64,000 bases of DNA from Styela clava (taxonomy: Eukaryota), in the NCBI RefSeq assembly GCF_964204865.1, contig NC_135252.1, positions 11,718,001-11,782,000 on the forward strand, written 5' to 3'. Position numbers and translations under genes: made by a program. Below, piece by piece: positions 6,201 through 58,500 of the stretch (position 1 is the first letter of the stretch; the number at the start of each line of letters is the position of its first letter). Under the pieces are notes generated by a model. It saw only the letters and a program-made list of their open reading frames with translations. It ran no database searches and was not told the origin of the DNA.

Positions 6201-9200
6201 TATTTCAATCCATACCTCGATCCTAGTAGAATATAGTGAGTCGAGGTATGGATTGAAATAAATGATTGAGCACGGGCGATTGATTTGTCATACGAGACTA
6301 TCCGTATCTCCCATTCTTTCATGAGTGATTGCATGGGTACCGGTACGGTCAGACGGTACCGTACCGGCATCGCACGAGTGTCCACAGACTCCAGACAACT
6401 GAGCAGTTAAGCAGCATTTTTCAATTCAATTACCTTCTACACGTAAAAACAAATTTTCGTATTCAATTCTATATTCTCTTATCATTATTATAAATATATT
6501 GCTTGTGGTTGAACTTGTAGCATGGAGAATTTATAGAACATTTTCGTTTTGAATTTATTGGATATTGCTCTTGAAAATCAGTAGTGAGTTAGAAACCCAG
6601 GAAACACATTTGTGCGTGTAGGATTAAGCCTAACAACGTTGGTCCCAAGCAGCATCAAATTTTCTAAAAATAAAAACGCGTGACAACGATGGGCCACGAG
6701 GCGGACCATCGTTGTCAACCTTTTTATTTTCTTTTTATCCAATTTTTTTTTTTTTTCAATTTTTTTTTTTTTTTTTTTTTTCGTTTATTTATTTTTTTTT
6801 TGTTTTTATTTTCAATTTTTTTTTTAATTTTAATTTTTTTTTCTTTTCTTTTTTTTCAATTATTTTTATGTTTTTTCACAACTATTTTTTTATTCTCGCT
6901 TTTTCATTTTATTTTTTCATTTTTTTTTTAATTTTACGCGTGACAACGATGGGCCACCATACACCAGTCCTGAAAACTAAACATTTCAAAAACGAATGTA
7001 ATTCTCACTATCTACAATGTATAATCCCCAAAATAGCTAATCAGTTTCAATTGCATTATTTTTTATGTTTAAAAATATATGTTTCATCAATATAACATGT
7101 TCTGCACACCCACCGAAATGAGAATGAGAATAAATATAAAGAATATAACAGCAATGCACCCAATATAAAAGCCAACCAAGGTGAATTGGACTCGGACAGT
7201 GAATATCACAAGTGCACGTCTTCCTATACTGTAGTATAAATTCAAATTAATACGCGCTAAGCTAGAATCCGAGATGCAAAAACTGGAAAATACTTCGCCG
7301 AGGTTATTTTGCCTTTGTGACGTCACAATAGTACTCCTGTAACCATGATAATTCATTATGACGAAACAATTGCACAAATGTGCATGTCATACTAAATCTG
7401 CATTTTTATAGGTTTCGGAATTCTTAAAATAAAATCTGAGTTAACAGACAGGTGCGCAGCCTTACATAAATACCTATTTTAATAAAAACTCAAAATCGCC
7501 AAAAATGACTTACGCAATTCGGTTATTAGCGTGACGATATTATAGATACAGTGGTGATAATAAGAAAATATTTTTACTACAGTTTAAAATCGATTCTAAT
7601 TTGCAAGACCTATATTCAAAAATAATTCACAATAAATAAGAAGAATAAAAGTGTAAATGAATACATTGCGTGGGTGATTTATGACGAATAATATCAATAT
7701 AAACGGTATTTTTCAGAGGAGGTGTCAAGATCAGTAGCCTATATTTATGATGACGGGGATGAGATGCCACCCATGGATATGGAAGGTACAAAAAATTTAT
7801 TTTTTTAAGAAATCAAGATAAAATACATTCTAATTAATCAATATTTATTCTTAAGCTTCTTAAATTCTTTATTTATTCTTCTTATTCCATAAGCGAATTA
7901 TTTTTGCAGTTATGGGGCCTCATGACTACGCAGACGACTTACTGAATGGAGAAAGAGTTCCTCCAGATGACAGTAGGTATTTTTATTCCTCGGCACAAGT
8001 AAGAAATAGGCAGCTATGTACGATAGCTGTACCTGAGTACGATTAAATTTTAGACGAATGCGTGTTTTAAAATCATACTCGACGGCGACAGTGAACGGGT
8101 ACATCCAAAATTAGAAGTTGGATCTCAGGTTAAATAAGATTTAAACTTCCTGGCTCACTTATTGGGCTTGCATACGAGGATCGTATAGGAACGTCAATAT
8201 AAGTCGTCTGATCTGATATTCAATAAAATTTTCACCGTTAATTTTTCTTGGTTCAAAAAATCATGTCTGTTATTTATTACTAGAATATACGCATCCATGA
8301 TACCAAAGTTAGAACTGATAAAGTTTGTATTCAGATACTCTCATTCCTCCAATTGACTCAGAAGTTATGTTCCCAAAAGATACAGACGATATTCTGAATG
8401 GTGGTGATTCATTGAATGGAAATGATTACGGTAAATTAATTTCATTACATTGATTTCCTAAAATGTTAATTCTCTCTCACACATAGTTTGTAAAATACCG
8501 TCACAAACGTGAATCATAACTTTTAAAAATGAATATGTATTTTTCATTGTTAGGTAATATTAAAAAAAGTTTCAAAATTGAAAAAGTGCAAATAGAGGTT
8601 TTTTATTATTTATCTAAATCAAAAAAGCAACTATTCGGATATGTGGACACCAATTTTTGTATGGGTAGTATGTCTTTAAGTAGTCAGGGTGACGCGTCAT
8701 AGGTTTGCGAGCTAGAAGCAGATTTGGTACAAGCCTCATTCAAGACATTGTAAATATGGGATTGTGAAAGCAAAATCGTGAAAGAAACCCCACTTTCCCA
8801 TATACTCACAGTTAGTCCGGCACCTTCACTCGCCGCCATTATCCTCCCAAGCTTTTAATTTCCAGGTGTTCAAAGTGTTCCAAGTTCCAATTGTTTAAAA
8901 TTTAGGAGGTAGTAGATTTTTTTGCGACTAGCGATAAATTTATTTATAACTTATAAAATGTGTTATGTGATTGACTGACCGTCTGTACTGGTATAAATGC
9001 CTCTTTCTGAATATCCGGATACAATTATATGCAGGTTAAGAATTAAACTGTGGTATCACACCTCAAAATCAACTTCGGGAGTACCTCATATTCATGTTAA
9101 AATACTGAAAATATAAAAAGCGGTCGATTGGAACACGGTTTTTATACTAACAGAAACATTTTGGCAACAAGGCCATTAAACCCACTCCCATATACAGGGT

Positions 9201-12200
9201 AGTAGAAGCAAGTTGAATTGTTGATAAACTTTTCTGCAAAATAAAAACAAATCAAAGGCTAATGCTAATTTAGATCATTATTTTATTTTAGAACCTGTAC
9301 CGGATTATGGCGATTATACAGCGCCATCTACTGGAGAAAGACTTCCTCCTGGTAAGACTTTGCTGTAACTTATCTACTGCTGTAATGCATATAAAAAGTA
9401 TGGACTACCGGTAGAATAACAGTTCCAACAGGGTGTATTAACAATTTTTGCTATCATTTCAAGAGTCAAGGTTGATAATTTATTCTATGATTTTATCAAT
9501 CATCATTGGTGTATGCTTTCAGTCCTTCAATTATTGGTTTAAAAGTTCACTTTCTGTAATCGCAAGCACCAAGTATATGATAGAATATTAATAAAAAGCC
9601 ATAACTTGAAATTATTGTGTTTTTCAAATATGTTCAGCTACTCCTACAACATTGTGTTTATTTAGATGCGTCAGTAACATGCCCATCCATCATTGCACCA
9701 GAGCGTGGCGTAATGGAATGTCTAAACGGGAATGGCATTGGATCTATTTGCCTCTTTACGTGTGATGAGGACACAAATATGGAGGGTAGTGATTCGATTA
9801 TATGTGACGCTGATGGAGCCTGGAGTGCAGATGTGCCATATTGCGTCCGTAAGTTAGATTTCCCTGAAACGTAATTCTAACATATGGGGAACTTAATATA
9901 TACTTATGAACTTTCGTATACAGTGTTTTATTTCATTCAGTAATTGAAGATGTCATAATCACAGTTTGTGAATAGTATATCAGTAAAATTTTTCTCACTA
10001 CACAAAAATATAAATTAATTAAACAAAATTTATTCGGAATTTATTTTTGAATCAACTAAATATATAGTCGGAATAAAACTGTTAATCATTTGATATTACG
10101 CAACCATTTAATACAGGAATATATTGTCAACCTCACCACATTACTCTTGACAACGGAGGTGTAGATTGCACCGACAGTAATACTTTTCAATCGGTTTGCA
10201 TGTTTACATGCAACGATAGACACACGATGACTGGAAGTAAATCTGTTATTTGCCAGAAAAATGAATCCTGGTCAGATCCAGCACCTATGTGTGAACCAGG
10301 TAAAATCAAGACATTTGGTTTAATTTTTGTAATATAGGTTTTGTTTCGGAAACTTGGAATCCCAATGTACATGAAGCGCTAACTTAACAGTTGAAGTGAA
10401 ATATGTATATATATCCACACAATTGTCGTAACGCAATGAACTGAAACCTAAAGTATGTCACGCCGCGGCCAGAAAAGATCTAATTGATCGACTATCAAGA
10501 AAGTATATGAAAGAAGCAAAAGCTTGAAGTTGTAGGTATAACCGTGTCACACACACATTTGAAGAGAGAATATATATATATATATAACTATTTTATCTTC
10601 ATATTTGATGTACTTCATTTGAATTACTTTTTCATTAGATCCCGTAAACTGCGAAGAAGAGTATGGTGATTGGTCTGCTTGTGAAAACGGAAAACGTATT
10701 AAAGAAAGTGTCATGATTTCGTCGTCATCAACATCAGTCGTGTGCCCTGAAATTGTGGAAGGTCTGTTTCAAGCAATACAAAAACGTGTTAGAAAATAAC
10801 GGCGTTTTCAGATGCGATTCTTCCAATTGCCTCGAGTTTTTCTTTTTGCTGCAATTACTTTTAACTTTCTACTTCGTTCATTTGTTTATTGTTTGTTTTG
10901 AATCTCTAGATTGCATCAACTGTGAACTTGACTGGGGTCCCTGGGAAGAATGTGATGATGGAGTGAGATCACGCACTCAGTACGTACTGAAGGAGAAAGT
11001 AGGGGCTGGAGAGGACTGCCCGGAACCAAAAGTGTCACAGCAACGTATGTTGCTATACCTCATGGTTTTATGTATAATTTAAAATGAGAATATATTCATA
11101 TAAACAAGTAGATGCCACTTTGGTATGTGATTTCAGCTGTTGTGTGATTTCAGTGATTTTAGTATCAACCTAACTCTAGCCCAACGATGGCAGGGTTGGT
11201 GCCACATTGGTATGTGTTTAATATTCTAAAGACATTACCATAGATTTCATTTCCCAGCCATAATTCGAACTAAAATCCCTGAGATCACACACCCGCAGAG
11301 ATTGCATACCGAAGTAGCAACAATAAATATACTCAGCAATTATATGTATATTGTGGAATGCTATTCTTGTTTCAAATTTCAAAGAGGGAAAGTTCACCTG
11401 ATTGATCTGCCAATTCTACTCGCATCTTCGACGAAAATTTTATATGACCCTTAGTTTATGTCACATGATAAACTAGATCTGTTTTGTTGAATTTGCATAT
11501 ATGTTGTTCTGTAATTTATTATTACAGAATGCTTCGATTGTGTTATTGAGTGGGGAGAGTGGTCAACATGTTCAGGAGGGACTAGAACTCGATCACAGTA
11601 TGTGAAAGTGACACCTGTAGGAGGTTCTGAATGTCCACCTCGAGAGACGGAAACACAAGGCAAGTTAATATTTATATTTCAAGAGTTACTCAGTTCAGTC
11701 GCAAAATTCTATTTTAGTTTGTTAATTACTAAGATCTGATTGCTTAATGATATTTTGTAAATGTTTGTTTATCCTCGATTTTCTGCAGATTGTGTCGATT
11801 GTGTCGTTGAATGGTCTGAATGGTCCGATTGCTACAAGGGTGAAGCGGCGAGAACGCAATACATAACACAAGCTGCGGCCAACGGAGGAAAAGAATGTCC
11901 GTTATTAGAACTTGAAAAAGAGAGTATGTGTATTCTTATTGCTTATATTTCATTCATTAGGACGTGAACATATCTACAGTCATTCTTATTGAAATTCTTA
12001 TAATTTTTTTAATTTTTATTTAACATTAAAAAGTGTACAATAAAGTAGAAGTTCCTTTTAAAATACATGTGCGCACCGGTTATATGTTTTATAATTACCA
12101 ATATTTACTTACAGATCATGGTAGATTGTCTTACATTGTCACACATTCACATTTGTTAAGATGCAACAATATTTAAAACTTGTATCAAATTAAATGTTCA

Positions 12201-15200
12201 TAATATTTTGTATGTGTACAGAATGTACAGACTGTGTTGAGGGATGGGGTGAATGGAGCACATGTACAGATAACGTCAGCATAAGACAAGAGATTATTCT
12301 TGTTGAACCTGAAGGAAGAGGAAAACAATGTACTGAACTTCTTCAGTCGGAAGAACAAGGTATGTGGCCACGATGATACAGAAATAATAATGCTTAGTCT
12401 GAATCATTAAAACAAATCGTGAAACAATTTAGCAAGCTTTTATAACGTTGATATACTTGGATGATATAAAAAGAAGAGGCAAAGCGAAAAATCAGGATGG
12501 TTTTACATATATCTTACTTTTGTTCCACTTTGTGATTCGTTAAATCAATCCTTCAAATTTAACAGGACAATCTTTATACTTTAGTTTATCAACATTAAAA
12601 ATTAATCATAATAAAAATAATTTAAAATTATAGTGTTTTATTTTTATACAGCATCTAAAGTAAGAAAATATGAGTTCTTCCTATTACAGAATGCAGGAAT
12701 TGTGAAGTTGCTTGGTCTGACTGGGGCGAATGTGAGGCAGGTGCGAGAAGCCGACAACTTGAAATTATATCTCCGGCGATTGGAAACGGAGCTCAGTGTC
12801 CTCCTGGATTAGACGAAGAAACTGAAGGTATGGCCCAAAAGACATTGAATATCCTTTTTTTTCGTTTTTTTCATTGATCGATTATTCAATCGCGGGTTAC
12901 ACGTTCAATGAAACTTTGTCATTCCAAAAATCCAGTTTGTCAAATGGTATCTTGCCCTAACTTATTTTACCGCATTGTATTTTAACAAATGAACAGAATG
13001 CGTACATTGCGAAATGGAGTGGGGAGATTGGGGAGAATGCATAGAAGGTCAACGTCAGAGAACTGAAGTTATAGTTGTTGAACCAAGAGGAGCAGGAGAT
13101 CCCTGTCGTTCACCAAATTCTGATTCTAAGAGTAAATATTACAATTTTTTATAGCAAAAATTTACCTGAGTGGTGCAACAAAATTATAAATAACAATAAT
13201 ATTTTATTTGTTTAAATCACTGTGAATACTTCTGTTTTATTGGTTTTCAATTAAACTTTCAAACTCAGTAGCTTTAGTATCAAAGTATAATACGTGTGAA
13301 TAACACCACCAATATTCAGATACCCTATACGGTACCCTAATTTGAAAGTCACTTTAGGCAAAATGCGTATAGTAAAAATATCTCAATATATTTTGAGCCA
13401 AAAATTATAATCATATAGTTATGGTATCGTTTTTTAAATACATTGAAATAACAGACATTGTTTTCAAAATCGTTTAAAACCTACCACGATGTCATACAGG
13501 TTGTGCCAAATGCGAGATATCATGGGGAGATTGGACAGTATGTGAGAATCAAAAGAGGGAAAGAAAACAGTTCATCAGTCAAGCACCTTTTGAAGTTGAA
13601 GAACCATGCCCCGAACTTGATACTGAAGAAGAAGGTGTGTCAGGCCGTTGGCTGAGTGTTCACACTCATTAATGGATATGTTTCATCAATACTTTTCTAA
13701 ATAAAAAGAGTCATTTGTCAGAATTGTATTTTAAAAATAGGGCTACAATACGAAAAATTGAGGAACTCGCCTCGAATCTCAGCGAACGAGAAAATAACAA
13801 TATGGCGGCCATTCGAAATCTTTGTCTGAACCGATTCGAATAATTTACTATTCGACGCGAATATTTGTTTCAAAATGCCCAGCCCTATCACGAACACAGT
13901 CGATTGTAGTTGATGTCATCAGCTAAAAATCAATGTCAGTGGGACTTTATCGACTCTTTGATTTGTAATAATTTAGGGAAAACACCAAATCACATCAGTA
14001 TTAATGCACATTTTACAGCTTGTATTGACTGTGTATCGTCCTGGGGTCCGTGGGGCGAATGCTTGAATGGACTACAAGAGAGAACTTTGATTATTGAAGA
14101 AGATCCAGTAGGTGCAGGAGAAGCTTGCCCAGAAGAGAATTATGAAGTTCAAGGTGAAACTTTTACGTTGGCAATTGACACTAGGATAGGGTTGAATTTA
14201 CAATTATAATATTTATCTCGAGGGAGAGGAAATCCGATGGACAGCTTAATCATATGACGAACCACGGCCTCCAGTCCGGTTATACCAGTCCATGTCGGAT
14301 ATGAGATTAGTTAGCCGATTATTTGTTTTCCGAAGCATGGCATGGCACTGAAAATTTAAATAACGACTTCAAATTCTGCAGAGTTTTCCTCGACTATTGT
14401 TTTGCAGTTTTACATTAGTTGGGTGTTCATAGCAACTTTGTATGTATTTATTTATAAATTAGTAATTTTGCATTTTACATAGAGTGCTGCTTCTATGAGT
14501 GGGGTGAATGGAGCGAGTGCGAAAACGGCGATAGAACTCGAAATGAACAAATTGTTGTCCAACCACAAGGGGAAACTTGTCCACCAGGGAAACAGGAATT
14601 TGAATGTAAGTTAAACCAGGAAGATAGTAAGTTTCGAAAAAAATTGTGACGATATTATGAGAGTTTTTGCTGCATGTATTTTTGTAGTTTTTTTTCGCAT
14701 TTTCCGCTGTACAGATCATTTTTCCTATTCATTATATTATATTCTGATAATTTGTTTTTAAGGGATACAAGCCTATTTTAAATTTTTTATACGAAAGCTT
14801 TTTCAATGAGAATTGTTTTTTACAATTCAATTACAATTTTGATTATTATGGCGTAAGCGTGATAGTTGAATACTCATTTAATTTACCAGTAGTTTATTCG
14901 CCCTACATTTTTGGTACACCTGTATATAATAGTTGCTATGATTATACCGTCCTAATATTGATTTACCAGCACCCAGGGTAAATAATGCAAAAACGCTGCA
15001 GCCGATATCATATTACATTACGTGAAGGATTGGAAATTATGAAATGAGTATTTTTTGAAGATACATTTCACAATTCCTTTAGCATGCGTTGACTGCATTG
15101 TGGAATGGGGACCTTGGGGTGAAGAATGTATAGATAACACCGTGTTTAGATACCAATTCATAAAGCAAGCCCCAGTTGGAGCCGGAGATATTTGCCCTGA

Positions 15201-18200
15201 GCTGCAAATTGAAGCTGACTGTAAGTGATTATTTTGCTCTATATCGAGGGAAATTTTAAAATGGCTGTTGAAATTTGATAACTTTTTAGGTCAACTAATT
15301 CAAATATGATCAATAAGGGTTAAAATGGGCGGATTCGAGCTGCGGTTCATGATGAAATTTCAGTTCAATCCAGAATTCGTATAAATGTTTAGATTCAGCT
15401 AGAGTTCATAAATTTCAATTCAATTTATTGGACTGTTTGCGCTCGCTTGACAAATTCACAATCTCCCATTTAGAATTCAATTACTAAGAAATAAAGATAA
15501 CTAAAGTCGTGTTCTATTCATACATCAAGTCTTTGCTATAATTATTAGTGTGCGCCAATTGTGAGGTAGAGTGGGAGCAATGGAGTGAGTGCGTTGATAA
15601 TTACAGAGAGCGATCTCAAGTCATACTTGTGGAACAAGTAGGAGCAGGAAGCCCATGTCCAGACTTGGAATTTGAAACCCAAGGTAAATCACTTTATAAT
15701 CGTTTGTTTCGCATTTGGCGTTCATAAATGAACATTATGGTTGTTTTTTCTGCATACATCTAATCAAAAATCATACATATCTGTTGAATATAGAGACATG
15801 CGCCACCAACGAATTTTTCAGTACTCTCCAAGTCTTCAAATATACTGATTTCTTCAATTCTGTCATGATATTTTGGTCTTTATCTCCGATGAAATTTCAT
15901 TGAATATAGTGGAAATAATAGTCGATCTATCTCCGATTGTTTGATAGAAAACGCATACTCCAAAATTTATATATATGCGTACATTTGCAGAATGCGCTAA
16001 CTGCGAAGTCGAATGGTCAGAGTGGAGCGAATGTGGAAATGGAAAAAGAAGTCGAACACAGAATATTGTTGTATCAGGGTACGGAGGAGGAAATCCATGC
16101 CCAGTTTTGCAGGATGAAGAGGAAGGTGGGTACAAAGTTTTATTAACCTGGGGCTCGTACTAATGTCACTAATAGAAAAATAACAGAATTTTAATTCGTC
16201 GTATATTTTTTTGAAATAAAGATTTCACCATGATCACTTTCACTTCAAATGAAAATATATTTATTGTAATTTCAGACTGTGTCGACTGCGTTGTGGATTG
16301 GAGAGAATGGTCAAAATGCGAAAGTGGTTCACGAATACGGGAAATGTACATCAAAGTAGCCCACGTTGGCTACGGAGCGGAATGTCCACCCTTGGACGCA
16401 CAACAGGAAGGTACATAATTTCACAATCATATAAAAACTGATGGTTTTAGGAAAAGTTTAGGTTGTGTACTTAAGAACTTCATCACTTCACTAAATTATG
16501 AATAAGCATTTTCGATCGAAAAATATTCGACATATTCCATCATTTTTGCAATTCTTATTGCAGTTTGTGCAAATTGCGAAGTTGATTGGTGGGAATGGAG
16601 TGAATGTAGCAACAACATGAGATCGAGAAGACAATATGTTGCTGTTGAGGCATTCGGTGGGGGAGAATCATGTCCTGAATTAGAAACGGAAGAGGAAGGT
16701 TTGTTCGATATTTATTGGTAATGGTAACCCTCAAAATTTGGACTTTTAATCAATATAATCTTTGCTATTTTTAACAATTTTAAGAGTGATATCTTTAGAT
16801 CTACAGCCAAAGAAACCAAGTTCAAATATAGCTTGTTCACCCAAATATTTATTACACAAATTTTATTAGCTTGCATTGACTGTGTTGTTGAATGGGGACC
16901 ATGGACTGATTGCTTCGGTGAATTAAGGACAAGGAGGCAGGAAATAGTTGTTCCTCTTGTTGGAGCTGGAAGAGAATGTCCACCACTAGAATCTGAGACT
17001 GAAGGTATTCATGTGGTTTCGTATTCAAGAAATAAGTGTTCGGCAGTTGTAAATCAATACCTGCTGAGCAAAAATCTAATTTTTAATTGCGGTATGATAG
17101 CTTCTTCAATTGAATGTTGCTTTGTTTCATCAACGACATGAATTTTATTCGGATAATGGAGCTTCATTGCTTATATTCCTAAGCATGGGTTTCCAAGCTA
17201 ATATAAGTTAATTTTTACTTAATATCTCCAATAACCGACTCGCAGCCATTAAAAGTTTATTATTATGATGCAATAAACTAAATGGTATTTAGCGAGTGAT
17301 GAGAGTACACAGTCTAAAAATCTTCAATTGACTAACTTCTGGCTGAACGTATGTCCTTTGCTATCCGATTCCCCAGATCTCGAAGTTCCAACAATGGGAA
17401 CGCGAATAAGGGTTTTTTACGTTTCATACGTTCAGGTTCGAAAACAAGATATCGTCTGTTTCTGTTTGATTTTTTTTTTAAACGCTCGAATTTGTACATA
17501 TTATATTTAGTACAAATCTTTAATTTCTCGTGTTTATGTCAGTCATTCCATTATGGCGTGTAGGATTTATTCATATAATTTATGTAGTAACATTCGTTTG
17601 ATATAATACGCTAGCTTGCATCGTTCCTGGATCCAAAAAAGCACTGGAGAAAACTATTTGCAGATTTACTGAAGAAGTTCTTGGTTACAAGAAAAATCAT
17701 CGAAAGCGTGATCTTCTTCTGATTGGAGATGAATCAGGAAGTATTGGTTGGGTGAACTTTGCCAAGATCAAAGAAAACTTCAAAGTAAGTTAAATTGGAA
17801 GTAAGTTAAAGTAAGTAATTTGTGCTGACGTTTCATGACAGTGATCAAACTTGAAAATGTAATAGGGTTTGGCGCTGGAGCCCGGCTCTCCGGGGCCACT
17901 AGCTTACCATTCCTGATAAAGACTGTGAATTGAACGTTTGGTTCAGTTTATCAAACTTCTTTAGCTTTGTTGGAATTAAAAATGTATTTTATAATATTGT
18001 CACCAAGAATCTGCGATATGTTATCTATGATTGATTTCGACAAAAAATGTGAAGATAATAAATTCCTAGATTTTTTATTCCGTGAAATTTCGGCATGAGA
18101 TCCAAATCAAAATTAAGCAGTGCCAAGTCCCAAGGCGACTTTCCATGAATCGACTTTAGTGAATAACCTTGGTAGTTTACGAATCCAGCTTATTCAAAAA

Positions 18201-20221
18201 TGAAAGTGATTATTATTTTTATAAAGTGTAGATAATGCTTTTTTATTTTTCATTCGTGGTGAAAAATGTAAATGCAAAAATTAAAACATAAAGACCCATT
18301 TTAAACAACTTTTTGGGCCTAAAATGACTTGAAATTAATTTAAAAGAGACTTTTTTCCTAAATTTCATACTATGGTTCAAGTCGATTTTACAAGTAGGCC
18401 CCCACCAAGTAACGAAAACGTCATCAAAACGGACTTTCTTTACCAAAAATAATGAACGTTGCTTCTGTCACATTCTAAATATCTACGATAGTAGATACAC
18501 ACAGTTTCACACTACAACAGGCCCAAATGACTAGCACTAAATTTTTCTGTAGTAAAGACGGCATCAAATGGTGTCCTAGCAAAATATTGATATCAATGTT
18601 TCATTTGAAATTTTTCATTTCTAGACTTTATCGCCACCTAACTGAATTTTTCAACGTCCGTTACCAATGACAGTACAACGTTGGTGACCACATATGGAGG
18701 CCTATTTGTAAAATCGTTTTCAACAATAGATCGAAATTTAGAAAAAAAAAAAAAAATTGTTGTTAGGGTGTATCTTATTGCTACCGGAAAATAGCCTTTC
18801 TCCACAGCGAATGCATCAATTGTTTTCAAATTTGCAGTACTTTGCTAGAAAGCTATTGTTCCATATTACCTAAATTCACTTTCACTCGCAATTCTGCGGT
18901 ACGACTGGGTCCTTTTACTTTGTGTGTTTTGAAGGAGGGGTGCCACGTTCAGAAAAGTATGAAAAGGATTTTTGCGTTTCTATATTTTAACAATTTCCCC
19001 CACGTACTTACAGGCGATCGCCCGAAATATTAGAGGTGGAATTGGATCGGAAGAAACTCAGTTGGCAATGACTTCATTTGCTCGTTTTAGTCGCACTTTA
19101 TTTGATTTTGACGATTTTGATAATGCTATTGATGTCGTTGCTGCAATTGATGAAGCTTATTTCCTCGGTGGATATAGATCCAGAATAGGAGATGCACTAG
19201 AAGATGCCAACCGTTGGCTTTTCCAGCAGACTGGAGGTTTGTCGAAGGCATTGATAAAATCATTTTTAACATTACTCAATAGGTCTTAACAATTACAATA
19301 AAAACAATTTAATTATACTGCCCGGCATGCTTTACGTCGTAATATGTCTTTTCCTAGTGAAAAAATTGTTTCCACAATCAGAAATAACGGTTTATCCAAT
19401 AAAAACTATATTCTAATTATGCTTGTACATACTAGTAATTGAAATCACGGGCAAGACAAATTCATCAAAACAAACGCAGTGACTTGCACGTGATAAAATA
19501 AGGTCACGTGAACAGTTGCAGCTTCACTCTGCAAACCCTGCACACGACACCCAGACAATATATATAAAAAAAAAACTATAAAACAGCAAAGCAGTCCCAT
19601 CCCAATATAATTAATTTCTCCAAGTTATTTTGTAATTGTATTTTTACCTTCAAGGAATGCGAAGCTTTCCCAATATTGACGACAGCATCGAACACGAGCT
19701 TCTGATTGCAACTGACGGATGTCGTACCGCTGATAAGTATATGCTGCAAGAGGGACTGAAAACAATCAAAAAACGTGGAATAAAGGTATTTTAAAGTAGT
19801 TGCAACTAAGCAAAATATTTGTAAATATACCCACTGCAACGTTAGATTTGTTTGAACAGAAATATGGCCTAATCATATTGGGGTAAACGATAACGCATTG
19901 CTTTCTTCAACATAGCTGTACGTATTGGGAATTGAGTCGAAGGATAAGCGTTGTGCCGAAACAGTAGAGTCAATGGTGGAAGACAAAAATAACCTGTTTC
20001 AATTGGGAAGCTGGGAGCAACTAGACGAATTGAACAAAAGATTAGAAGAAAAGGTTTGTATCACCAGCGAAGTTCGTGTAGATGATAGTGACCGTCGGGG
20101 AGATGAAGGAACATCTGAAGGAGACGCAGAATCATCTTTCATAGGCGACGAATTACCACCCGATGACGGAGTTGAACCCAGTCCGCTGAACGATGGATCT
20201 CGTCGTGGAGACGGAGTCTAA
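3207..20221 (+). CDS. Large multi-exon extracellular mosaic protein: SEA-like + acidic DY linker + 2x CCP/Sushi + 16x TSP1-like + vWA + RGD tail (>=1344 aa; 5' end not resolved)
   Basis: Phase-consistent exons read by hand: 3207-3277, 3536-3646, 4400-4462, 4871-5033 (SEA-like: DLSDIDSEDFKAEALTVQQE..SLRSVGS), 7717-7785, 7910-7972, 8335-8430, 9292-9351 (acidic, DY/PP), 9666-9848, 10117-10299 (CCP: C..C.F.C..C...W....P.C), 16 phase-1 exons 10639-17004 (CxxC...WxxWxxC...RxR...G..CP), 17615-17784 (DESGS MIDAS), 19014-19236, 19655-19785 (IATDG), 19916-20221 (stop TAA). AATAAA at 20241. No start codon or signal peptide exon identified with confidence; 2672-2704 is a candidate upstream exon. Confidence 0.9.
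5421..6961. mobile_element. ~1.5-kb foldback (almost fully palindromic) element nested in the TA-flanked element
   Basis: Termini TATGGTGGCCCATCGTTGTCACGCG / CGCGTGACAACGATGGGCCACCATA with a 6-bp TSD CACCAG (5415-5420, 6962-6967). The arms pair up to a ~20-nt loop at ~6221-6240 and include A-rich and T-rich tracts. Confidence 0.88.
5521..5649. other. Assembly gap (N run)
   Basis: 129 Ns inside the A-rich arm of the foldback element. Confidence 1.
13738..13887. mobile_element. Small degenerate MITE
   Basis: TAGGGCT...AGCCCTA termini and internal TTCGAA repeats; no TSD. Confidence 0.4.
14225..14345 (-). mobile_element. SINE 3' fragment
   Basis: Reverse complement of the CCATGCTTCxGAAAACAAATAA...GGTTCGxCATATG core seen at ~23020-23110. 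Confidence 0.8.
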
Positions 20222-35181: not shown

Positions 35182-36281
35182 ATGGATATCACGATATTTA
35201 TAAGGATTATTATAATTGCGATTACGTTCACATTCGTCACTTCAAGCCCGGTTCTTCAAGTAAGTTTTTTTTAATTATTTTTGGTGTTTTGTGTTTAATT
35301 AGTTACGATCATTAAAACAAATGTTTACAAAGCATTATGCAGTACAATGACATAAGGTTTTAATTACGTTAAAAATACCAAATGATGAGTTACTAAAACA
35401 AAACTAGTCGACTGAAGATATTTCACATTGCATACCTAATAAAAACATTGTTCTAATGACACACCTCTTTTTCAGCATAAATCTTCAGGGATGCCACATT
35501 TATTGCGCCGACTCCTTCACAGCTATAATACTATGCCAAAATCTGGGGAAGTGAGTCCGGAATATTATGTATCGCCTCCAAACGTTATGAGAAGATACCG
35601 AAATTACGATTGGCAATATTACGATGGCAGAAGACAACACAAAAGGCAATCGGGATTAACACCCAGCCGATCAGGAAAAAGGTGAATACATTTTTATTGC
35701 CTTATTCCAAATTTGTTTTATAAATTGTTTATCGCACGAATTGTAAATCCATTGAGTTTATTTGGGAAACTGTAATAATAGAAGTCAAAAGACCTGCGGT
35801 CTAGTATCCACGCCCTCTAACTTACTTACATTATACATTTTACGACTACACACTTTGTGAGCACCCTAGTAAATGGATATAAAATATTATGAGTTGACAT
35901 CTATTACTGAATTATACGATCCAAATTTATTTCCACAAAATATCTGTTTAATTGATTTATTTCCAACGAGCGAAACTATATTTTCTAAAATCACTAAAAT
36001 GCGCGAAGTATAGCTTTAAATGTTATATGAAATCTTATGCAGAATTATGATTTTCACTAACCCTAGCAAAAATATTAGAAATAATCTCAAACTTTCAAAT
36101 ACCTTTCACTATTACAGTATTCATTAAATTTTATTTTTTGTTTAGAACGGTAATATGTGCAAAGAACAAGCGCGGTCGATGTGTCGCAAAGTGTGGATTC
36201 GGAGCACCTTTGGATCAAATATCGAAGAATATGTTTTTTGGTTGCAGACCAACGTTAACATTCCGGCATCAGCGAATATAA
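35182..36281 (+). CDS. Secreted peptide precursor 1, natriuretic-peptide/osteocrin-like (139 aa, 3 exons)
   Basis: Exons 35182-35259 (MDITIFIRIIIIAITFTFVTSSPVLQ, signal peptide; donor GTAAGT), 35476-35681 (pro-region with RR/GRR/KR/GKR sites; phase-2 donor GTGAAT) and 36146-36281 (RTVICAKNKRGRCVAKCGFGAPLDQISKNMFFGCRPTLTFRHQRI*). TATA box upstream and AATAAA at 36959. Confidence 0.85.
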
Positions 36282-39212
36282 TTATGGAAATAACATATTT
36301 TAGCCTTGCTAAAGACGAAAAATTATATTTGCACAATTGGGCGTATGACATGCACAATACACCCCAATCTTTATACATTTCTTACATTTTCTGTGCCGGA
36401 ATACTGTGAACCAACGAAACTGTTCATTAATACATATCAACATCGTCGTTACTACGGTGAATATAATATGTACTGTGCCCACGAATGTTTTAAACTTTAC
36501 TGAAAGCTACAAGAAATCCTGAAAGTACTTTTGATGAAAATTTGTGGAGTGCATCTGGTCAATCACAGATTATCGTCGGTTTGAACCAGAAAATACCGAA
36601 TTGTAATAACATCAATGTGAAGTTTTTGCATATTTGTTGCAGTAATATTATTTATGCGGTAGTAATATCGATGCAATGCAATATACGGTTTTATTTTCAC
36701 TGTTACATTGTATTTTTCCTATCTTAAACGATACAAATTTTTTTTATTATTTATTGAAATCATCAACGATTTCGCAAAGCCTTAAGTGCTTATACATTCG
36801 TGCTTTTGAATGCTGTTAGAAAGGCATCATAAAAATTCATAATAAGCTATATATTATAGTTAAAGAACGAAAATCGTTTGGTGATAAGTTTGCTTGCTTG
36901 CGTATTGTCTTCAACATTACACTGTAAATTTATAAACAATTAACGTTATTTGTTAAACAATAAATATATATGAAACAATACAAAATGGTGACTTTCATGT
37001 TTTATAATTGATCATCCGCGACTGAAGTAAGTGAGGGAGGCACTGGCATAGTCGGTGTATAGGGGTAGTAGATATATGGGGGGTAAAAGCATTTCAATCC
37101 AAGAAAGATGCCAGCCTAATACATCTGCGATAAAAAGAATTCGAAACCCAATTCTTTTCTCCCAAGCGGATGTAGCGTCTTGCTTAATGGCATTGCGGCT
37201 TCACATCAAATCATTTTACGTTATGAAAATAAATTCAATCATTTTAATGCCCCGGAGGTTGCCATTCACTGTCTGCCAGCAAATGCGGATTCTATTAATA
37301 GTTATCGGTAAAACATACAACCGAAATTCGATGCCATTGCATTTCACATAAAACAACTGTCCACATTCAAAAGCATTCAACAGCCTACCTATATTGAAAT
37401 GAAAGGTGATAGTTTTGTTGATACAGAGAGACGTGCGTGCACCTTGATATAGTATGAAACAACGTTGTTGTAGACGCGAACCCAAACAATAGTGAGGCGA
37501 GAGTAGGACTGTTCAATTATTAAGCGAACCTCAAATATTCGTACGTGATCTCCCACGCAAATGTTGCAGATGCCCCACTTCTTCAAACTTTTTTAAGACA
37601 ACTAAAGATCAAATGTATACTGCGGACAAGGAGATGGACAAGTCGAGCACTCTATTTTTAGGCTTAAGCGTTACCTGATACGTAATAAACAAAATCTTTT
37701 TTGATAACTTTTTATTAACTAACTACAACCTGTACACCAATGGACTTGGAATTCAATTACAATATCCCATATTGCTAAAGGTAAACTGCCTACGTGCAAG
37801 TTAGCCGAGTGAAAATGGCTACTTTTTTCGTGCATTCTGAAAGCAAAACGGTGCATCTTGGTATTTACAATAACTGTAAACATATAGGTCAACGATTAGT
37901 ATTACGTTGGATGTTTATAAAAACGATATTTTGATATATTTATATCTTGTATTTACATATTTTGAATGTCTCATTGTGTTTACAGGTTTCAATGTGCACG
38001 AATAAAAGTTCTTCAACGTATGTCCCACTACGCGTTATTGAGTAAATTCATACGTATAGCGTCTCATTATCTCCGTCCTCGGGACACACTGAAGTTTTTC
38101 TTTCAACAGGTCATTTTTTAATTCGAAACGCTTAGCACCATGGAGTAAAAAAAGAAGACCATCCCAACACTTCATTTGTATCATCAAATAAAATGTTAAG
38201 AAAACGCTTCTAGTGAAGTCATTGAAGAAACAGTGACTTTTCGGTTGTTGGGGCAACCTATGCGCACTAAATACGTTGTCCGCTAATGTGTCGCTATAAG
38301 GATTCTACAACTATGTGGTCGCATATTATAATGAATAAAAACTATAATATACTAAACAACACTCAAGTCGAAAACAAAAGCTAGCGTGACACGGCATTTG
38401 TACATCGATTCATAAAATGTAGTAATTAGCTTCTTATCGCTAAGAAATCTAGTGAAAAATTCGAATTTGCTTGGCATTGAGCGAAATTGTGTTCTATTGT
38501 GTTTATGAAACAAATAAATTGGTGGAGAACAGGGCGTAGCATAACCATCGTAAATATTTTCTTCTTGGAAATTCTGCATACTTGCGCAACCGTGGAATCG
38601 GTCATTTTGTCATGAAACTAATCCTTTAAACTGCCAAACTGCCTAGACTGAAAACATCTATAATTTCTTAAATATTTTTATTGAAAATGATAAAACAAAA
38701 AATGAAGAAAATTATGTAGCGAATGCGCGGATACATAGGCATTAAATGAGAGCATAATTACAAACCATCGAGAAACTGGAATATCATAAGCGGAAGGTAA
38801 GAAACCGTTTTTGCCTGAACTAAGTCCTGCCATGGGGGCCAGGGACTGAGAAAATGTGAATACTTGGATTAACTACCAAGATCGGTGCATTTAAGTTAGC
38901 GAATCATTGCCATGGTTTAGCAAAAGTGTTTTTATTTGTAAAATAAAAAATAAATATATCTATAAATAAACAGATAAATATCACAGAAGGAATACAATAT
39001 TTCGAATGAATAGAATAAGATTACAATTAAATATTTAGTAGGATGTAATTTTCATACAAGTACTAAAAATAAATCCAAAGAACAGTGCCTGTTTTATACG
39101 CAAGCTGATACGCATCTTTTTTATTGTGCATTATTTGATGCATGTATGTAAATCAGCCTGGGCTAACGCGTTACAGTGAAGTTTATTTGCGGACGTTTCT
39201 CGTTTTCCTCTT

Positions 39213-41722
39213 CTAAACATGAGGCAGTTTCCTCGTTCTACATCCAAATCCAGTGCTGAATGAGATGCGATCAAGAGGCACATTAAATGGACACGTCGTG
39301 ATGCGACATTTTCCTTTCCTCTGACATGAAAGTCGAGCCATCTTTCGACCACTGTAAATAGAATATCGGCATTTAGAAACTCAAATTTTTTTTTTCTGGT
39401 ACCTACAAAAAGCAATGTAAACAAAAGCATCCATTTGTTTCCTCGACTATTTTCAATTTTTGTTACTCGTGTCGATACGAGAAAAACAAGCGGTTATATG
39501 GTATATCGGTGCATAGCAAAAACAGCTTATGTGTGATGATAGATTATAAAAGTCATGTTATAAACAGACTTTGTTCAATCTCTAATGAACTGGACCTCTA
39601 ATCACCCAGCAAAACCCTTCAGGGCAATTAAAAATTGTCTCGACATATTTGGAGTAAAAATGACAAGCGTCCAACATTACAGCACGCGATGACCTGGTTG
39701 ACAGCAAACGTGTTTTTCGATGATCGTCGATTAGATCTATCAAGTGTATTTTCTTGTCTTGTTTATCGCATAAACGATTTGTGGCATTATGTCTCTTTAG
39801 ACAAAATTCAAAAATTGAAATTTTATGGATGAAATGTGCAGATTGCGTGCGATTGCCCACACGCTTACCACTTATGTCACAAAGATCAATTGCGGGATAA
39901 TTAGTCACAAAAATAGGTCCATGAAATCGCGTAATGATGATTATTAAAATTGGTTGCATTTTTCAAAAAACGGATCATAAACTAGGCGATTAATGCGCTT
40001 GTCGTATATAGACTTTTCCAAGTGGCTCGGAAAACTTTTCACTTTCTATATAAACAGACAAATTTGAAAGCAATGGAAGATAATTGGAATCGCAGATGTA
40101 ATAAAAAAAATGATCAAGAAACAATAAGTAATGCTCCATCAGAATGCATGTCCAGCGAATCAGTTACACGAGAGATTTTCAATTTGAATATATGGAAACT
40201 AGACTATTAGTTTTAAAAATAATTCTAAATGTATGAAATAAGCGAGTAATACGAGCGAAGGAAAGCACAAAAGTATTAGTACAACGATATATTAAAGTAA
40301 CACAAAACTGAATTTAAATTCAATAGAACCTCCATCTTACTTTCTCAATCCTCTCTTTACGTGATGTTTGCTCTTAAGTCTTCGACTTTCTTCTGAAGTT
40401 ATGGACTTATCTTCGAAAATACTTCTGAAAAACTCTGGAAAAAAAAATACATTGAAGAAAATGTCGATGATAAGCAAACCGTAAACTGGAACATTATTTT
40501 TATATATGTTTTTTCGTTTAAATTATAAATTTAATTTTATAGGTAATCAGACCATTCAGATGATCATACCATTCTTGGTAAATTATATTACGAACGAAAG
40601 AACGAACTTATGGTTACTGTTGAACATCATCAATTTAAAGCAAATTAAGTTCGTGAATAATATAGGACTCTTATTGTCTTGAAAAATCCATTTAGTAGTT
40701 GTCCATTCAGTTCATTCCATTTAGTCCATTTAGTATAGTTGTATCAACAAATATGCAGTTGCAGCTTATAGAGGAGAAAACGCTGCAATGATTGGATTCG
40801 AGTGAAATCGTCGGGATTTCCTCGTTTAGAATGAAATTATAACTGGATTAAATTCTAAATATATATAAATATTTACCTTTGTGAGGTACAAGAGCTTCGA
40901 GCATTTTTAAATCTGATAAAAATCCTTGAAATATTATGATGTATTCATCTGGATCCCCAGAATGTTCATTAATTTCAAATTTTCGTAAATTTTCAAATTC
41001 TTCTGGCAAAGTTGAAGCAAGATGGCGACTGCTTGTTGGTAACGAACTCACGAGTGTTGAAATCTGACAAAAATTTAGAATAATTCTCAACAATTCATTC
41101 TTAATGGCTAAAGTATTAAATCGATTTGGAAACTTAGTTGTAAACAGTGCGATTGGCATTAGTAAAAAAGCGAAATTTTTCTCTGTGTTTTCAACGACCC
41201 GTCATCTTTCTGTATTTTCGATGGAAAGGGAGAATGGCATATGAATTTGATTAATGACTTTTCTATAAAACATGGTTTCCACTATTTATAGAAAAATATG
41301 GTATATAATAATAACCGAATTTTAACTCATTAAGCACTAACGAGCTTTCGCGGTGTATCAGCATTCTCTCATATCACCAAATGTAAAGACAGTCATTTTA
41401 CTCATGTCCAGCAAAATCTACTTGGTACACCAAACTACAATGTACTTAGTTTCAAAAATATACATCGAGCCGTGTGTATAGTTATCTACTGAAGAGTATT
41501 GTACGTCAAAACTCTTCACGTTTGCTGTTATTCTCGTCCCGTCTTTCAGAAATATATTTAATTGTGGATATAAAATATCTCCTCTTTCTTATATTTATCA
41601 ATATATATACATGTATTATCCAGTATTCCTCTCACCTGAAGTATTAGAACGAAGTATATTGATGAAATCATACAAGAGTATGATATAGTTGCTCGAAAAC
41701 ATATAACGCTTGATATCTTCAT
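39213..41722 (-). CDS. Secreted peptide precursor 2, natriuretic-peptide-like (168 aa, 4 exons)
   Basis: Exons 41722-41636 (MKISSVICFRATISYSCMISSIYFVLILQ; donor GTGAGA), 41063-40877 (ISTLVSSLPTSSRH...VPHK; donor GTAAAT), 40434-40341 (EFFRS...KHHVKRGLR; phase-2 donor GTAAGA) and 39351-39213 (NGRKMARLSCQRKGKCRITTCPFNVPLDRISFSTGFGCRTRKLPHV*). All phases are compatible. Minus-strand AATAAA at ~39120-39125. Confidence 0.87.
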
Positions 41723-53832: not shown

Positions 53833-54244
53833 TTATGCTGCTTCCTGCGGCACAGCACCTGGAATGGGCAAAGCTCCTTCTATTAACTTTGCTGGACTTT
53901 TTTGCTTTGCGATGTCTACATCATCATCCGCCAGAATGTCGTCTACATCTTGAGCTGTCGTATCTTTTACTTTGTTTTCTTCCGCAACTTCATCAAGATT
54001 TTCTCTGCGAGGAGAAGCAACACCAGCAATTTTAGGAGATGCACGAACGCTGTCGTTAGCAGAAAGGCGTTGGCGATGTAGCATACTCCCCGTTACGCTG
54101 TTCGGGATGCGCTCTGCAACTGCTGTCGGCGTCCCCACTCCATTAGGCGACCAAATTTGCTTTGGTCTGTCCACTTGACCAGAATTCGGCAAGGTTGCAT
54201 TTCGTGTCCACAAATCTGAGCTGGGTTTATCTGGCTGCACATAT
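53833..54244 (-). CDS. Terminal coding exon for a low-complexity, probably disordered tail; likely exon 9 of the IFI44-like gene
   Basis: Open frame of ~136 codons with coding-like composition in AT-rich DNA. Acceptor TTTTCTTTCATAG (AG at 54246-54245) enters in phase 2, and the stop overlaps AATAAA. Phase-2 donors exist at the end of IFI44 exon 8 (TC|GTGATT after 55580; GG|GTTAGA a few nt earlier). Confidence 0.6.
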
Positions 54245-55575
54245 CTATGAAAGAAAATGTCTTAATGGACATCTAAGAACATAAAAAAAAATATATTGAA
54301 ATCATTTCAAGTTTCAATTCCCATACATTGCAAAATAAATAGTATAATTCAAATATTGATTGAAATTTCAAATGACCCAAACACGAATAAACATAAAAGT
54401 TCAGTCTCATTCTGTAGAATGAATATTTTATGTTCCTTCACCTTTGAGTATTACAGTACATCTCGGGTGTCATAATTTCCAATGCTGCTATTGGTGTCTC
54501 AACATCAAATATTTATCATCAGAGAAACTCAACATTTTTAAGTACTTGGCCAAACAAAGAATGAATTTCAAATAATACTTGCAAATGAAAATTTATTAAT
54601 AGCAACAGAGACGCTAGTTTATTACAAAGACGCTAGTTAAAACAATATACACATTATGTATTATATGGACTTATCGAAACTTTAAGAAAAATCCAAAATA
54701 TTTACGAATGACAGCTATTGCGCAAATCAGCCACTGCATATATAAACGAACAACACAGCCCTTTTTTAGAGTCAACAAACCTATATTATATTTTTGTACC
54801 CAATATTTTCAAACGGTTCTATTGCTCTACACAAAACAGTTTAATAGAATTAACATGTAGATATTACTATAAACTATCAAGACTATATTTTATAAACGCT
54901 TAAATTCTAATCACGAATTAATCATTCGTAAATATTGAACAAAGTTCAGGGCAAACATAGAAAGTCCGAGACATGCAAGTAACGATAATACCAGACTGTT
55001 GAACATCAGAAAACTTTTAGTGACAATACACAGTACTCACAGTACACAAGTTACTCAGTTTAAAAATTGAATATTGAATAAAATCGCGTAATTCAAGTAT
55101 AAAGTAATATTTTTAAATATACTTTATATATACGTATTTTCATATTATTCTTGTTATTACTTTGTGTACATATCGCCATCGAATAAATATAAAATTCTTA
55201 AAATAGGTGGATTTTGATTTATGATTTTAATTAGCAAACTACTGTGAACGTTGAGAGTAATCTAATTATAATATAGATATAATTAAAATAACTGAATGAT
55301 TAAATATAACAAAATACTGCTGAAAGTAACCCATTCAAAATATTCATTTGTTCATTTGTCTTCACTGGTTGTATAAATAATTCAACAGTTTTTATTTTTG
55401 AAATGAATGCTTGAGTTTAACTATACCAACATAAAAATATCACTCATTCCATGAATATATCTCATATAGTACATGCAATAATTCACTGGTATACAAGCAG
55501 TTCAACTGAAAATTCTTCAAATTGACCAAATGCTACAATATCGATCCATGCAACAGTTCGCATATCACAAATTAA

Positions 55576-58500
55576 TCACGATGCATCTAACCCAGTTTCT
55601 GAGGTCGAAAGACACTCATCAAAATAATTGTCCGTAAATCTCAGCATTTGTTGTAGTGCGCTCAGTGCCAGAGCATCTACCCAAGGATCAAGTTCGATTT
55701 CATGAGTGTAGTTTTTCACCGGCAAAATAAAACTCACGGGAACACCAATTTTTATGCTTGTCTGCAGTAATAAAATAAATACAAATTCTTTTGTTATTAC
55801 AAGAAGTAATGTAATCTGGTATGAGTAAAGATCAAGCATTCGCTCATTTACAATGTAGAATTGAAAAGACAAAAAGTCCGTTTCAAGATACCACCAAGTT
55901 CGGATATCTACAAAATATTCATAATCACCAAGCGTCAAATTTACCTCTATAAACCAGACACGTTTTATCACCTTGCTGGGATTGAAAAGATATGATCACT
56001 CGAATAAAAAAAAATTATTTCATTTTTTCAATTCATAAACTGTATTTATTAACTACTTGGAATCTCATATTGCTGAAAAAATACTACATTTTTCGGTAAA
56101 GTATAAAATGTTGTTAGATCAGAATATTTAGAAATAAATTAGGACTAAATACTCACCTGGGCTACAATATTTTGTATAACCGAACTTCGATATACCATCG
56201 AAACATTGGATGCTGTTTGGCTGCATGCCTTATCAATTTTAGTCAGCAGAATAATCATTGGTATACCTTGAAGTTTAATTATATATATAAGAAGCGAGAA
56301 TAGGTACGATCTACGATTGTTCCGTCCCTACTAACTTATTATGGTAAGGGACGTGGGATATCTGCGTGCGAAAAAGTGGCGTATGTTTCTAACACATTCA
56401 ATGCATTTTTAACATTACCGTACATTTTTACTCGTGTCAATGGTCAATGATAACTTGCAATTATAGTTGAAATAAGATATTCCAGGCGCTGTCGTCTTTG
56501 TTGCCATTAAAAAACAGGTATTACCTGATTTGACGTGATGTTTACGAAACACAAAATAATAAATACTAGATAAATTTGTGTTAGTCGTTGCAGGGCAATT
56601 ATATCAGTTTCGGAGATCAAAACGGTAATATAGTAGTAGTTAAAAATAGTACATCCAATAAGGAATGATATTGAAACATCACATATATATGTGTTTTAAA
56701 ACTTAATTCAAAAACTCATTTAGTCAATATGTTAGAGTGATTGGTATTGAAAAAAACGTTTTGATAAAATAAGCATAAATTCGTATTTATAATTTCATAA
56801 AATAATCAACATCCATTATAACGCAAAAATAATCACAAAATACTTCTTAATTTAGCTATAATCAAAAAGCGTACAATCTTTGCAAGGATACCGAAATTTG
56901 AAAAATCCTTTTTTACCTCTAGAGGTTATTTTCCCCCTCATGTCCGAAATTTTATGCAAAAGCCCTTCTCCCATGTTGGATATAGAATTTGCGTCCAGAA
57001 CAATAACGCAGCAATGTATCTTGTCTGATAACTTGGGCAATTTTATATAACCGTGCATTTCTTGAGAAATATTCCCTTTGTTGTCAAACTGTAATGAAAG
57101 ACAGATCTTGAAAATGTAATTTTCTAATTTTCATCACCCAGCTTTTCCAGCAAATGTCTACAAATGATAAACGCATTTCTTAATTTTAATACAAATCACG
57201 AAGTAAAGAAAAGTAGAGTAACTAGATGTAAATTCTTGTGCGCATTAGTGGATAATTCCCTTTTCGAAGCAGAGATTCAGACTGGCTACTGCAGGAATTT
57301 TTCTGGCATCTTATTACTGGGCAGTATACATGTCAACTTAATGATGTATTCACGTACTAAGCAAAATGTCAAAGAGCTTTTAAAATAAGCTTGTATTTAC
57401 ACAAAATATCAATTATTTATCGAGTTTGAAATTACGGCAATTTGAGTATAATTCAGAAGTGTGGATGCATATTTTTACCTCACGCACATCATAAATATTG
57501 CAAGAATGCCAATAACGCATATCCTGGGTAAAAATACATTGCAAAAATTTTTTAATTCCCTATCATTTCATGGGTCACACAAAATATTCATAAGAATATT
57601 ATAACATATATCAAATTACTGCCAATGTCAGCATATTACTGATTGCTGAAATGATCAAATTAAAAGCTGTGAGTTTTGCATAGAAAATGAAACATTATAA
57701 TAGGCCTACTACATGTACTATTTGTAGTGATCATAAAATGAGTATTATGCTCAGTAGAAGAGATTAGTATTTCGAGAAATAAAATGGAAAATGTGGAAAC
57801 TCCCATCATTGCCAAAGTTTGTGATTGCATCACAACAAAGTTATATCACAAAATGAGTTTGACTCATATATACCCGGCTAGGTTTTGACTCAATTCAGAA
57901 TAGCCCGAGGTCGGGTTATAAACATATACTCATTGCGGACTGCGTCTTAGTAAAAAAAAATGGCCAGGCTACGTTCACATTGTAAATCTTCCACCATTAG
58001 CGTCATATTGTTTTTTACAGTCAAAAGGAAAGTTTCTTGCAAACTTTTTGAAATGTCACCAAGAACGTTTTCTTTTGCAAATGTGATGTCTTCACCCAAC
58101 AGTTCGGTATTTATTACCAGGTGCCCACTAAGAATGAGGTCCATCGGCAAAAGATTGCATAGCTCAGCTTATGTTATAGACGCTACCACAGGTTATGGCT
58201 ATAAAAAATCTTATATATTGCATGGGATATTGTGGAATTCCGTTCAACCGAACTTTTCCTGATTGCGTTGAATTTGATCAGCATACCTACCCCAAATGAA
58301 AAACAAACGATACAAACTTGGTGATTTTCGGGTACGTGTCCATCCAGGATGTATGGCAATTCCGATGGATCGAATCCTTGTTTTCTTTCTTCTTCAAGAC
58401 CCATTGTGTCGACAATACGAAAATTAAGGACTTTTCCCTCTCTACCGTTACGAATTTGGTATGCTCGTAACTACAAGTAAATAACAATATTGATATCTTT

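Follow-up and report, generated by a model that had tools for sequence, protein, structure and literature searches.

A pair of Styela clava genes for four-cysteine prohormone-type peptides with a natriuretic peptide-like loop

The ascidian Styela clava expresses a correctly spliced gene whose terminal coding exon encodes a conserved, strongly basic peptide of 44 residues, lying after a ...GKR sequence at the C-terminus of a precursor with a poorly conserved pro-region. The exon is part of the 64,000-nucleotide stretch of genomic DNA that was analysed (hereafter the window). An earlier note, made from the letters of the window, had drawn attention to this exon, and the observation is confirmed: the exon is real. 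The gene (gene 1) and a neighbouring paralogue (gene 2) belong to a small ascidian family of peptides with four cysteines, in which the loop bounded by the last two resembles the ring of natriuretic peptides (NPs). The best overall explanation of the locus, that of a genuine gene of an ascidian family encoding an NP-related secreted peptide, is one to which we give an even chance. The proteins are already predicted in public databases, where they stand as uncharacterised.

The gene pair and its transcripts

Gene 1 consists of three exons (Table 1), and its product of 139 amino acids has an identical counterpart in the public protein library (P0002). The third exon, which encodes ...SGKR|TVICAKNKRGRCVAKCGFGAPLDQISKNMFFGCRPTLTFRHQRI*, is immediately preceded by a pyrimidine-rich tract and an AG acceptor, and the phase-2 intron after exon 2 splits an Arg codon. 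Both exon joins (35259|35476 and 35681|36146, GT..AG) are present in RNA-type contigs from runs X6, X7 and X10, which come from two studies, and the contigs stop at 36976-36980, that is 17-21 nt past the AATAAA at 36959. These runs are available as contigs whose assignment to RNA is a guess, and neither expression levels nor strand can be read from them. Individuals differ at three coding sites in the contigs (N, R, Y), each time synonymously. Across the runs the ring exon carries no variant, and the 3′UTR carries at least seven SNPs or indels, a pattern that fits purifying selection in a small sample.

Gene 2 is a convergent (tail to tail) paralogue about 3 kb from gene 1, with the C-terminus CPFNVPLDRISFSTGFGC. 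It was the one similar string returned by a six-frame search of the window (39351-39213, minus strand, reading ...CQRKGKCRITTCPFNVPLDRISFSTGFGCRTRKLPHV*). Its product of 168 amino acids is assembled from four exons and is identical to the library protein P0001. The last exon is covered by X6 and X7 contigs and the join of exons 1 and 2 appears as a loose end in X7, whereas the joins of exons 2-3 and 3-4 are based on the splice consensus and on P0001. In both genes the N-terminus of the precursor is hydrophobic (the signal peptide being judged by eye), the pro-region has dibasic sites and the C-terminal module sits behind a basic site (GKR or VKR); sites of the GKR, SRR or VKR type are found in the family.

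One X6 contig spans the last exon of gene 2 together with 125 nt of the preceding intron in unspliced form (39352-39476, minus strand), where it differs by four SNPs and one deleted nucleotide. Pre-mRNA, carry-over of DNA or an alternative start could account for it; a product begun at the in-frame Met of this stretch (MARLSC...) would have no signal peptide. In run X5, labelled as another organism (B), many 151-nt contigs are 99-100% identical to intronic or intergenic parts of 35508-39907, and the sample seems to contain S. clava DNA.

Table 1. Positions of the gene pair in the window, and of candidate receptor loci and weak ANP-model matches on other contigs (prefixed C)
Feature	Position	Strand	Details
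Gene 1, exon 1	35182..35259	+	Start codon; hydrophobic, signal-peptide-like N-terminus MDITIFIRIIIIAITFTFVTSSPVLQ; phase-0 donor; from sequence and gene model
Gene 1, exon 2	35476..35681	+	Pro-region with several dibasic sites; end ...SRSGK(R)
Gene 1, exon 3	36146..36281	+	44-residue four-Cys C-terminal peptide, net charge +8, plus stop codon
Gene 1, ring 1	36192..36245	+	CGFGAPLDQISKNMFFGC; 18 residues including Cys3 and Cys4; C-x16-C
Gene 1, 3′UTR	36282..36980	+	AATAAA at 36959; SNPs and indels among RNA runs
Gene 2, exons 1-3	41722-41636, 41063-40877, 40434-40341	-	Signal-like N-terminus; pro-region end ...HHVKRGLR(N)
Gene 2, last exon	39213..39351	-	Phase-2 start as in gene 1 exon 3; GRKMARLSCQRKGKCRITTCPFNVPLDRISFSTGFGCRTRKLPHV*; net charge +10
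Gene 2, ring	39240-39293	-	Within last exon
Candidate receptor cyclase locus	C9:5798000-5810300	+	ANF-receptor-type ectodomain exons (loci L007-L009)
Candidate receptor cyclase locus	C9:11039000-11049500	-	ANF-receptor-type ectodomain exons (loci L007-L009)
Weak ANP-model matches	C2:14929914-14929952, C3:12707317-12707349, C17:11602168-11602200		16-20 bits, e.g. GCFGDKLDRLAC, GCFGLKLQRI

The surroundings of the pair hold several other coding-like stretches. Upstream, the open frames at 10717-20218 (plus strand) encode a number of thrombospondin type-1-like repeats (CIxCxxxWGPWxxC...GAGExCP), after which come a VWA-like stretch and an acidic tail; together they probably represent one multi-exon gene of an extracellular-matrix or immune type. 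About 17 kb from gene 2, an exon-like open frame ...FRIVDTMGLEEERKQGFDPSELPYILDGHVPENHQ (58186-58470, minus strand) looks IFI44-like by eye, and a Ser/Pro/Asp-rich open frame of 142 amino acids (53836-54261, minus strand) lies near it. The window also has a run of 129 N at 5521-5649 and an adjoining T-rich low-complexity tract (6634-7092) that translates as a Phe-rich open frame. On another contig, a ClC-3/4/5-type H+/Cl- exchanger occupies a single uninterrupted frame of 773 codons and is thus intronless (C4:17462622-17464943; L014 1123-3444). Its product is 100% identical to a Styela clava protein at NCBI, and the next named matches, in Ciona, Phallusia and Clavelina, stand at 69-71%.

A four-cysteine peptide family of ascidians

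A HMMER scan of 1.84e9 representative proteins with a profile of both last exons recovered a family comprising P0001, P0002, P0003 and P0005 only; a fifth match, P0004, is a bacterial repeat protein and was taken as chance. P0003 (144 amino acids, from a transcript contig, E 2e-10) is the orthologue of gene 1. It reads CGFGAPLDTIS in the ring and ends in ...SRRAICARTRSGRCVAKCGFGAPLDTISNNILFGCSPVRRQKYQRI. P0005 (151 amino acids, E 4e-4) comes from Clavelina lepadiformis, where it carries no annotation beyond 'uncharacterized protein LOC143447357'; it reads CNFGTAIDRLS and ends in ...RYRCQKNKEGKCKIVKCNFGTAIDRLSYNPRFGCPILQRLGEQRKW. Styela belongs to the Stolidobranchia and Clavelina to the Aplousobranchia. 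As these are separate ascidian orders, the family is old within ascidians.

All four members have the arrangement C-x5-7-C-x3-4-C-x16-C near the C-terminus, downstream of a basic cleavage site, with the consensus C-x5-7-C-x3-4-C-x-F-[GN]-x-[PA]-[LI]-D-x-[IL]-S-x4-F-G-C. The four cysteines, one Gly of the first loop and the ring residues F, D, S and F-G are invariant among the members. Identity between members is 39-63% in the Cys module versus 20-39% in the pro-regions. For a relaxed form of the motif, defined after the fact, a six-frame reading of the whole genome should contain about 0.07 occurrences. Two were observed within 3 kb, both on terminal coding exons of genes for secreted precursors. 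The motif in the gene pair is more than chance and is conserved in two further species.

No further copies of the two peptides were found by a search of the genome. In Ciona, Phallusia, amphioxus and vertebrates no member was found at E<=0.001, a threshold to be read with the 36 bits of the Clavelina protein, which lie near the limit of the search, so that members there may have escaped it. The query sequences were single exons, or database proteins of other species, and did not include P0001 and P0002 themselves. The C-terminal regions of P0003 and P0005, used in word-based searches of proteins, retrieved nothing but themselves, and a search of the ESM Atlas with P0005 gave assorted chordate prohormones at scores all below 0.9, with no NP among them. 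Neither the products of the individual exons nor the homologues had a relevant match in Pfam.

Likeness to natriuretic peptides and the osteocrin question

When the gene 2 peptide alone was compared with the sequences of the PDB, BNP (E 0.5) and taipan TNP-c (E 0.9) were among six matches. The four-sequence family profile placed BNP at E 0.003 (20.9 bits), a BNP fragment at 0.024 and TNP-c at 0.11, and a profile of the ring only again gave BNP as the top match (E 0.0038); the ANP and CNP chains in the PDB gave no score with either profile. The database is small (177,635 sequences) and the motif is a short, Cys-bounded one picked by eye in a very large scan, so that a look-elsewhere effect is real for the E-value of 0.003.

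No gap interrupts the alignments with BNP and TNP-c between Phe and the closing Cys, or where they continue into the basic tail. Since the spacing from Phe to the closing Cys is that of classical NPs, the extra residue of the ascidian loop (G, P or N) falls between the Cys and Phe, and these alignments bear out the 18-residue ring with an extra residue at this place that had been described earlier. The C-x16-C spacing is found in all four members, in contrast to the C-x15-C of the 17-residue NP ring; 15 residues between the cysteines is the figure given for the NPs treated in PMC6878697, where Phe and Arg are named as receptor-contact residues. The family-invariant F, D, [IL] and G-C fall on NP-invariant positions, in register. 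Gly follows Phe in three of the four members, the ring Arg is present in two of them (gene 1 has Q) and the Leu of NPs is replaced by Phe.

Vertebrate NPs (ANP/BNP/CNP, PF00212), and BNP in particular, are likewise made as secreted precursors in which the active peptide forms the C-terminus, behind a basic cleavage site. They also have a Cys-closed loop, as is presumed for the family, and the register F-G-x3-D-R-I-S ... G-C from Phe to the closing Cys; BNP in addition has a short basic tail, as do the ascidian peptides. The ascidian peptides differ from NPs in their loop of 18 and not 17 residues, with an additional G, P or N behind the first Cys, in an added N-terminal Cys pair (C-x5-7-C), in F-G-C in place of L-G-C and, for gene 1 and its orthologue, in lacking the ring Arg. 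The N-terminal pair had been overlooked; the peptide has four cysteines and not two, and we infer an NP-type closure by the last two. An AlphaFold2 model of the mature gene 2 peptide from the four-sequence alignment reached a pLDDT of 65.8 and a pTM of 0.39, too weak for a fold search. Its predicted N-terminal hairpin (residues 3-10 and 14-21) would put C1 opposite C2 and leave a C3-C4 loop, which is at most compatible with such a closure.

Guanylin, uroguanylin and the echinoderm egg peptides (resact) are also short Cys-bridged peptides at the C-terminus of precursors, and they act on membrane guanylyl cyclase. The guanylins have four cysteines as well, with a spacing different from that of the ascidian peptides, and we know of no sequence similarity between ligands of this type and the ascidian family.

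The Pfam ANP model (PF00212, gathering score 27 bits) matched none of the four family members in hmmscan at E<=10, nor did a genome-wide scan with it give a match at the exons of gene 1 or gene 2. Three weak matches to the model elsewhere in the genome (L004-L006; Table 1) are strings of 11-13 residues in tiny open frames, with no closing ring or precursor context. They look like chance, half an NP motif arising easily in 377 Mb. Matches of TIMP-2 to the N-terminal Cys hairpin (E 0.7-3) were also taken as chance. Neither MTHFR nor CLCN genes are syntenic with the pair, the MTHFR and CLC genes sitting on other contigs, which says little because synteny between tunicates and vertebrates is poorly kept. 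On the sequence comparisons, the general likeness to NPs has statistical support of a borderline kind, and kinship of the peptide family to the NP superfamily appears plausible, yet it is unproven and could fall either way.

The earlier note had proposed a more specific link, in which ring 1 matches osteocrin (musclin, OSTN) almost residue for residue and may resemble the common ancestor of OSTN and the NPP genes. The residues it read, CGFGAPLDQIS in gene 1 and CPFNVPLDRIS in the paralogue, are correct and in frame, and the osteocrin motif SGFGSPLDRLS was quoted as printed in PMC10220261. According to that paper, the osteocrin peptide carries a second such motif, RRFGIPMDRIG, and the synthetic peptide is printed as C-terminally amidated. 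Over GFGxPLDx[IL]S, seven of ten residues of ring 1 are identical to the first osteocrin motif; the likeness ends there, with no similarity past Ser, and it does not extend to the paralogue or to Clavelina. The orthologue P0003 keeps GFGAPLD exactly, so that within the gene 1 lineage the loss of the GFGxPLD residues in orthologues, which the earlier note had named as refuting its idea, is not seen; gene 2 has PFNVPLD and Clavelina NFGTAID. Ring 1 matches taipan TNP-c (PDB 8s9y) at 8 of 16 positions; with osteocrin it shares 7 of 11 positions and none of the 7 that follow. TNP-c has a Cys-closed ring with FG-x-PLDRI, and differs from ring 1 in its 17-residue ring, its two cysteines and its G-L-G-C closure, and in coming from reptile venom, as a derivative of a vertebrate NP gene and not an endogenous hormone of an invertebrate. 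As this Cys-closed peptide carries CFGFPLDRIG, FG-x-PLD is no osteocrin signature. Osteocrin itself is Cys-free and has two tandem NP-like motifs parted by basic sites, in contrast to the single Cys-enclosed motif and four cysteines of the ascidian peptides. The Pfam Musclin model (PF11037) matched none of the four family peptides at E<=10 and nothing in a genome-wide scan, control genomes being likewise matchless.

That ring 1 specifically retains the state of the OSTN/NPP ancestor, as a Cys-closed version of the osteocrin-type GFGxPLDx[IL]S core, is improbable. It can draw on the seven identical residues, on the GFGAPLD kept in P0003 and on the Pro before L/M-D that three of the four ascidian peptides share with both osteocrin motifs. 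Against it stand the PFN of the paralogue and the NFG and A-I-D (not P-L-D) of Clavelina, the lack of osteocrin similarity after Ser and the silence of the Musclin model. The presence of FG-x-PLDRI in a classical Cys-closed venom NP makes the Pro homoplastic, and a character of one or two residues is no basis for polarising a relationship that predates the vertebrate duplications. On these alignments a specific osteocrin bridge is not supported. Apart from the general NP motif, the ascidian peptides have essentially a single Pro in common with osteocrin, and it arose independently at least once (in snake venom). The most parsimonious ancestral ring of the ascidian family would be C-x-F-G-x-P-L-D-R-I-S-x4-F-G-C, equally close to osteocrin motif 1, TNP-c and BNP, and any kinship of the tunicate family would be equal to all vertebrate NP paralogues. 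The osteocrin-like GFGxPLDxIS is best read as part of a motif common to the NP superfamily, with a recurrent Pro.

A different possibility, which deserves serious attention and on which we are nonetheless doubtful, is that the family consists of ascidian-specific cationic peptides with two disulfides, secreted for host defence or as an unrelated hormone; the NP likeness would then be convergence or chance, and no NPR-type cyclase would be acted upon. Net charges of +8 and +10 would suit a host-defence peptide too, and NP-like motifs in non-vertebrates were judged incidental in PMC6878697, which dismissed ten such matches; the Ciona one sits inside an enzyme and is not of the ascidian four-Cys family. 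The same possibility is favoured by the failure of the Pfam ANP model to match, by the wrong ring size and the extra Cys pair, by a similarity that reaches just E 0.003 in a small database and concerns BNP and TNP-c alone, by a family undetected outside ascidians at E<=0.001 and by short CFGxKLDR-like strings that occur by chance in the genome. It is weakened by the roughly 150-fold better E-value once family members are added, and by the coincidence of the invariant positions with those that are invariant or contact the receptor in NPs, the register being exact from Phe to Cys. The precursor, moreover, has the architecture of a prohormone, and a pre-vertebrate NP would be expected in tunicates, which are sister to the vertebrates. 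A further reading of the locus, as a chance open frame or an annotation artefact with no functional feature, drew no evidence in its favour and is scarcely credible: RNA contigs from two studies show exact splicing together with polyadenylation, the coding variants are synonymous without exception and homologues are conserved in other species.

Candidate receptors and implications

The signal peptide is probably removed and the precursor secreted, with a prohormone convertase cutting at the basic site to release a peptide of about 44 residues with two disulfides. One disulfide would join the last two cysteines to close the 18-residue loop, and the other would join the first two in a short basic hairpin. 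That loop would be a divergent relative of the NP ring CFGxxxDRIxxxSGLGC, and the peptide would signal through a receptor guanylyl cyclase with an ANF-receptor-type ectodomain, raising cGMP.

The genome holds about 14 loci with a cyclase domain, and in at least two of them, both on contig C9 (Table 1), ANF_receptor exons lie upstream of Guanylate_cyc exons on the same strand. One of these loci has transmembrane, kinase-homology and cyclase exons, the cyclase exon having human NPR1 as its best match (E 7e-24). In the other, an ectodomain exon has a weak best PDB match to NPR-C (E 0.15). The first ectodomain exon of the receptor at C9:11.04 Mb gave no match in the PDB. These cyclases are candidates for the receptors on which the two peptides would act.

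It had been remarked that the R-to-Q change in gene 1 might shift receptor preference relative to gene 2, and the remark is sound: the sequence is D-R in gene 2 and Clavelina, D-Q in gene 1 and D-T in its orthologue, at a known contact position. With the ring Arg lost in gene 1 and its orthologue (Q or T), the paralogues probably differ in receptor preference or potency.

NPs are regarded as known in vertebrates only, with the peptides arising after their receptors (PMC6878697), and Nppc and the ANP domain are listed as vertebrate-specific (PMC1868935). Full-text searches of the literature found no tunicate or amphioxus NP and no paper with the peptide strings of gene 1 or gene 2. We propose tentatively, at somewhat less than even confidence, that the ascidian four-Cys peptides may be true pre-vertebrate members of the NP superfamily and ligands of tunicate receptor guanylyl cyclases, with an ancestral core F-G-x-P-L-D-R-I-S that both osteocrin motifs and some classical NPs would still display. 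If this is true, the NP hormone system predates vertebrates, against the view that the peptides followed the receptors, and the ligand missing before vertebrates would be provided by a tunicate prohormone that is conserved, expressed and equipped with an NP-type loop. Two short synthetic peptides and a few receptor cyclases would then allow a direct test of how the NP system originated, and the natural variation between Arg, Gln and Thr, together with the 18-residue loop, would inform the requirements of NPR-type receptors for ring size and contacts. If the likeness is convergent, the genes still represent an undescribed family of ascidian secreted peptides.
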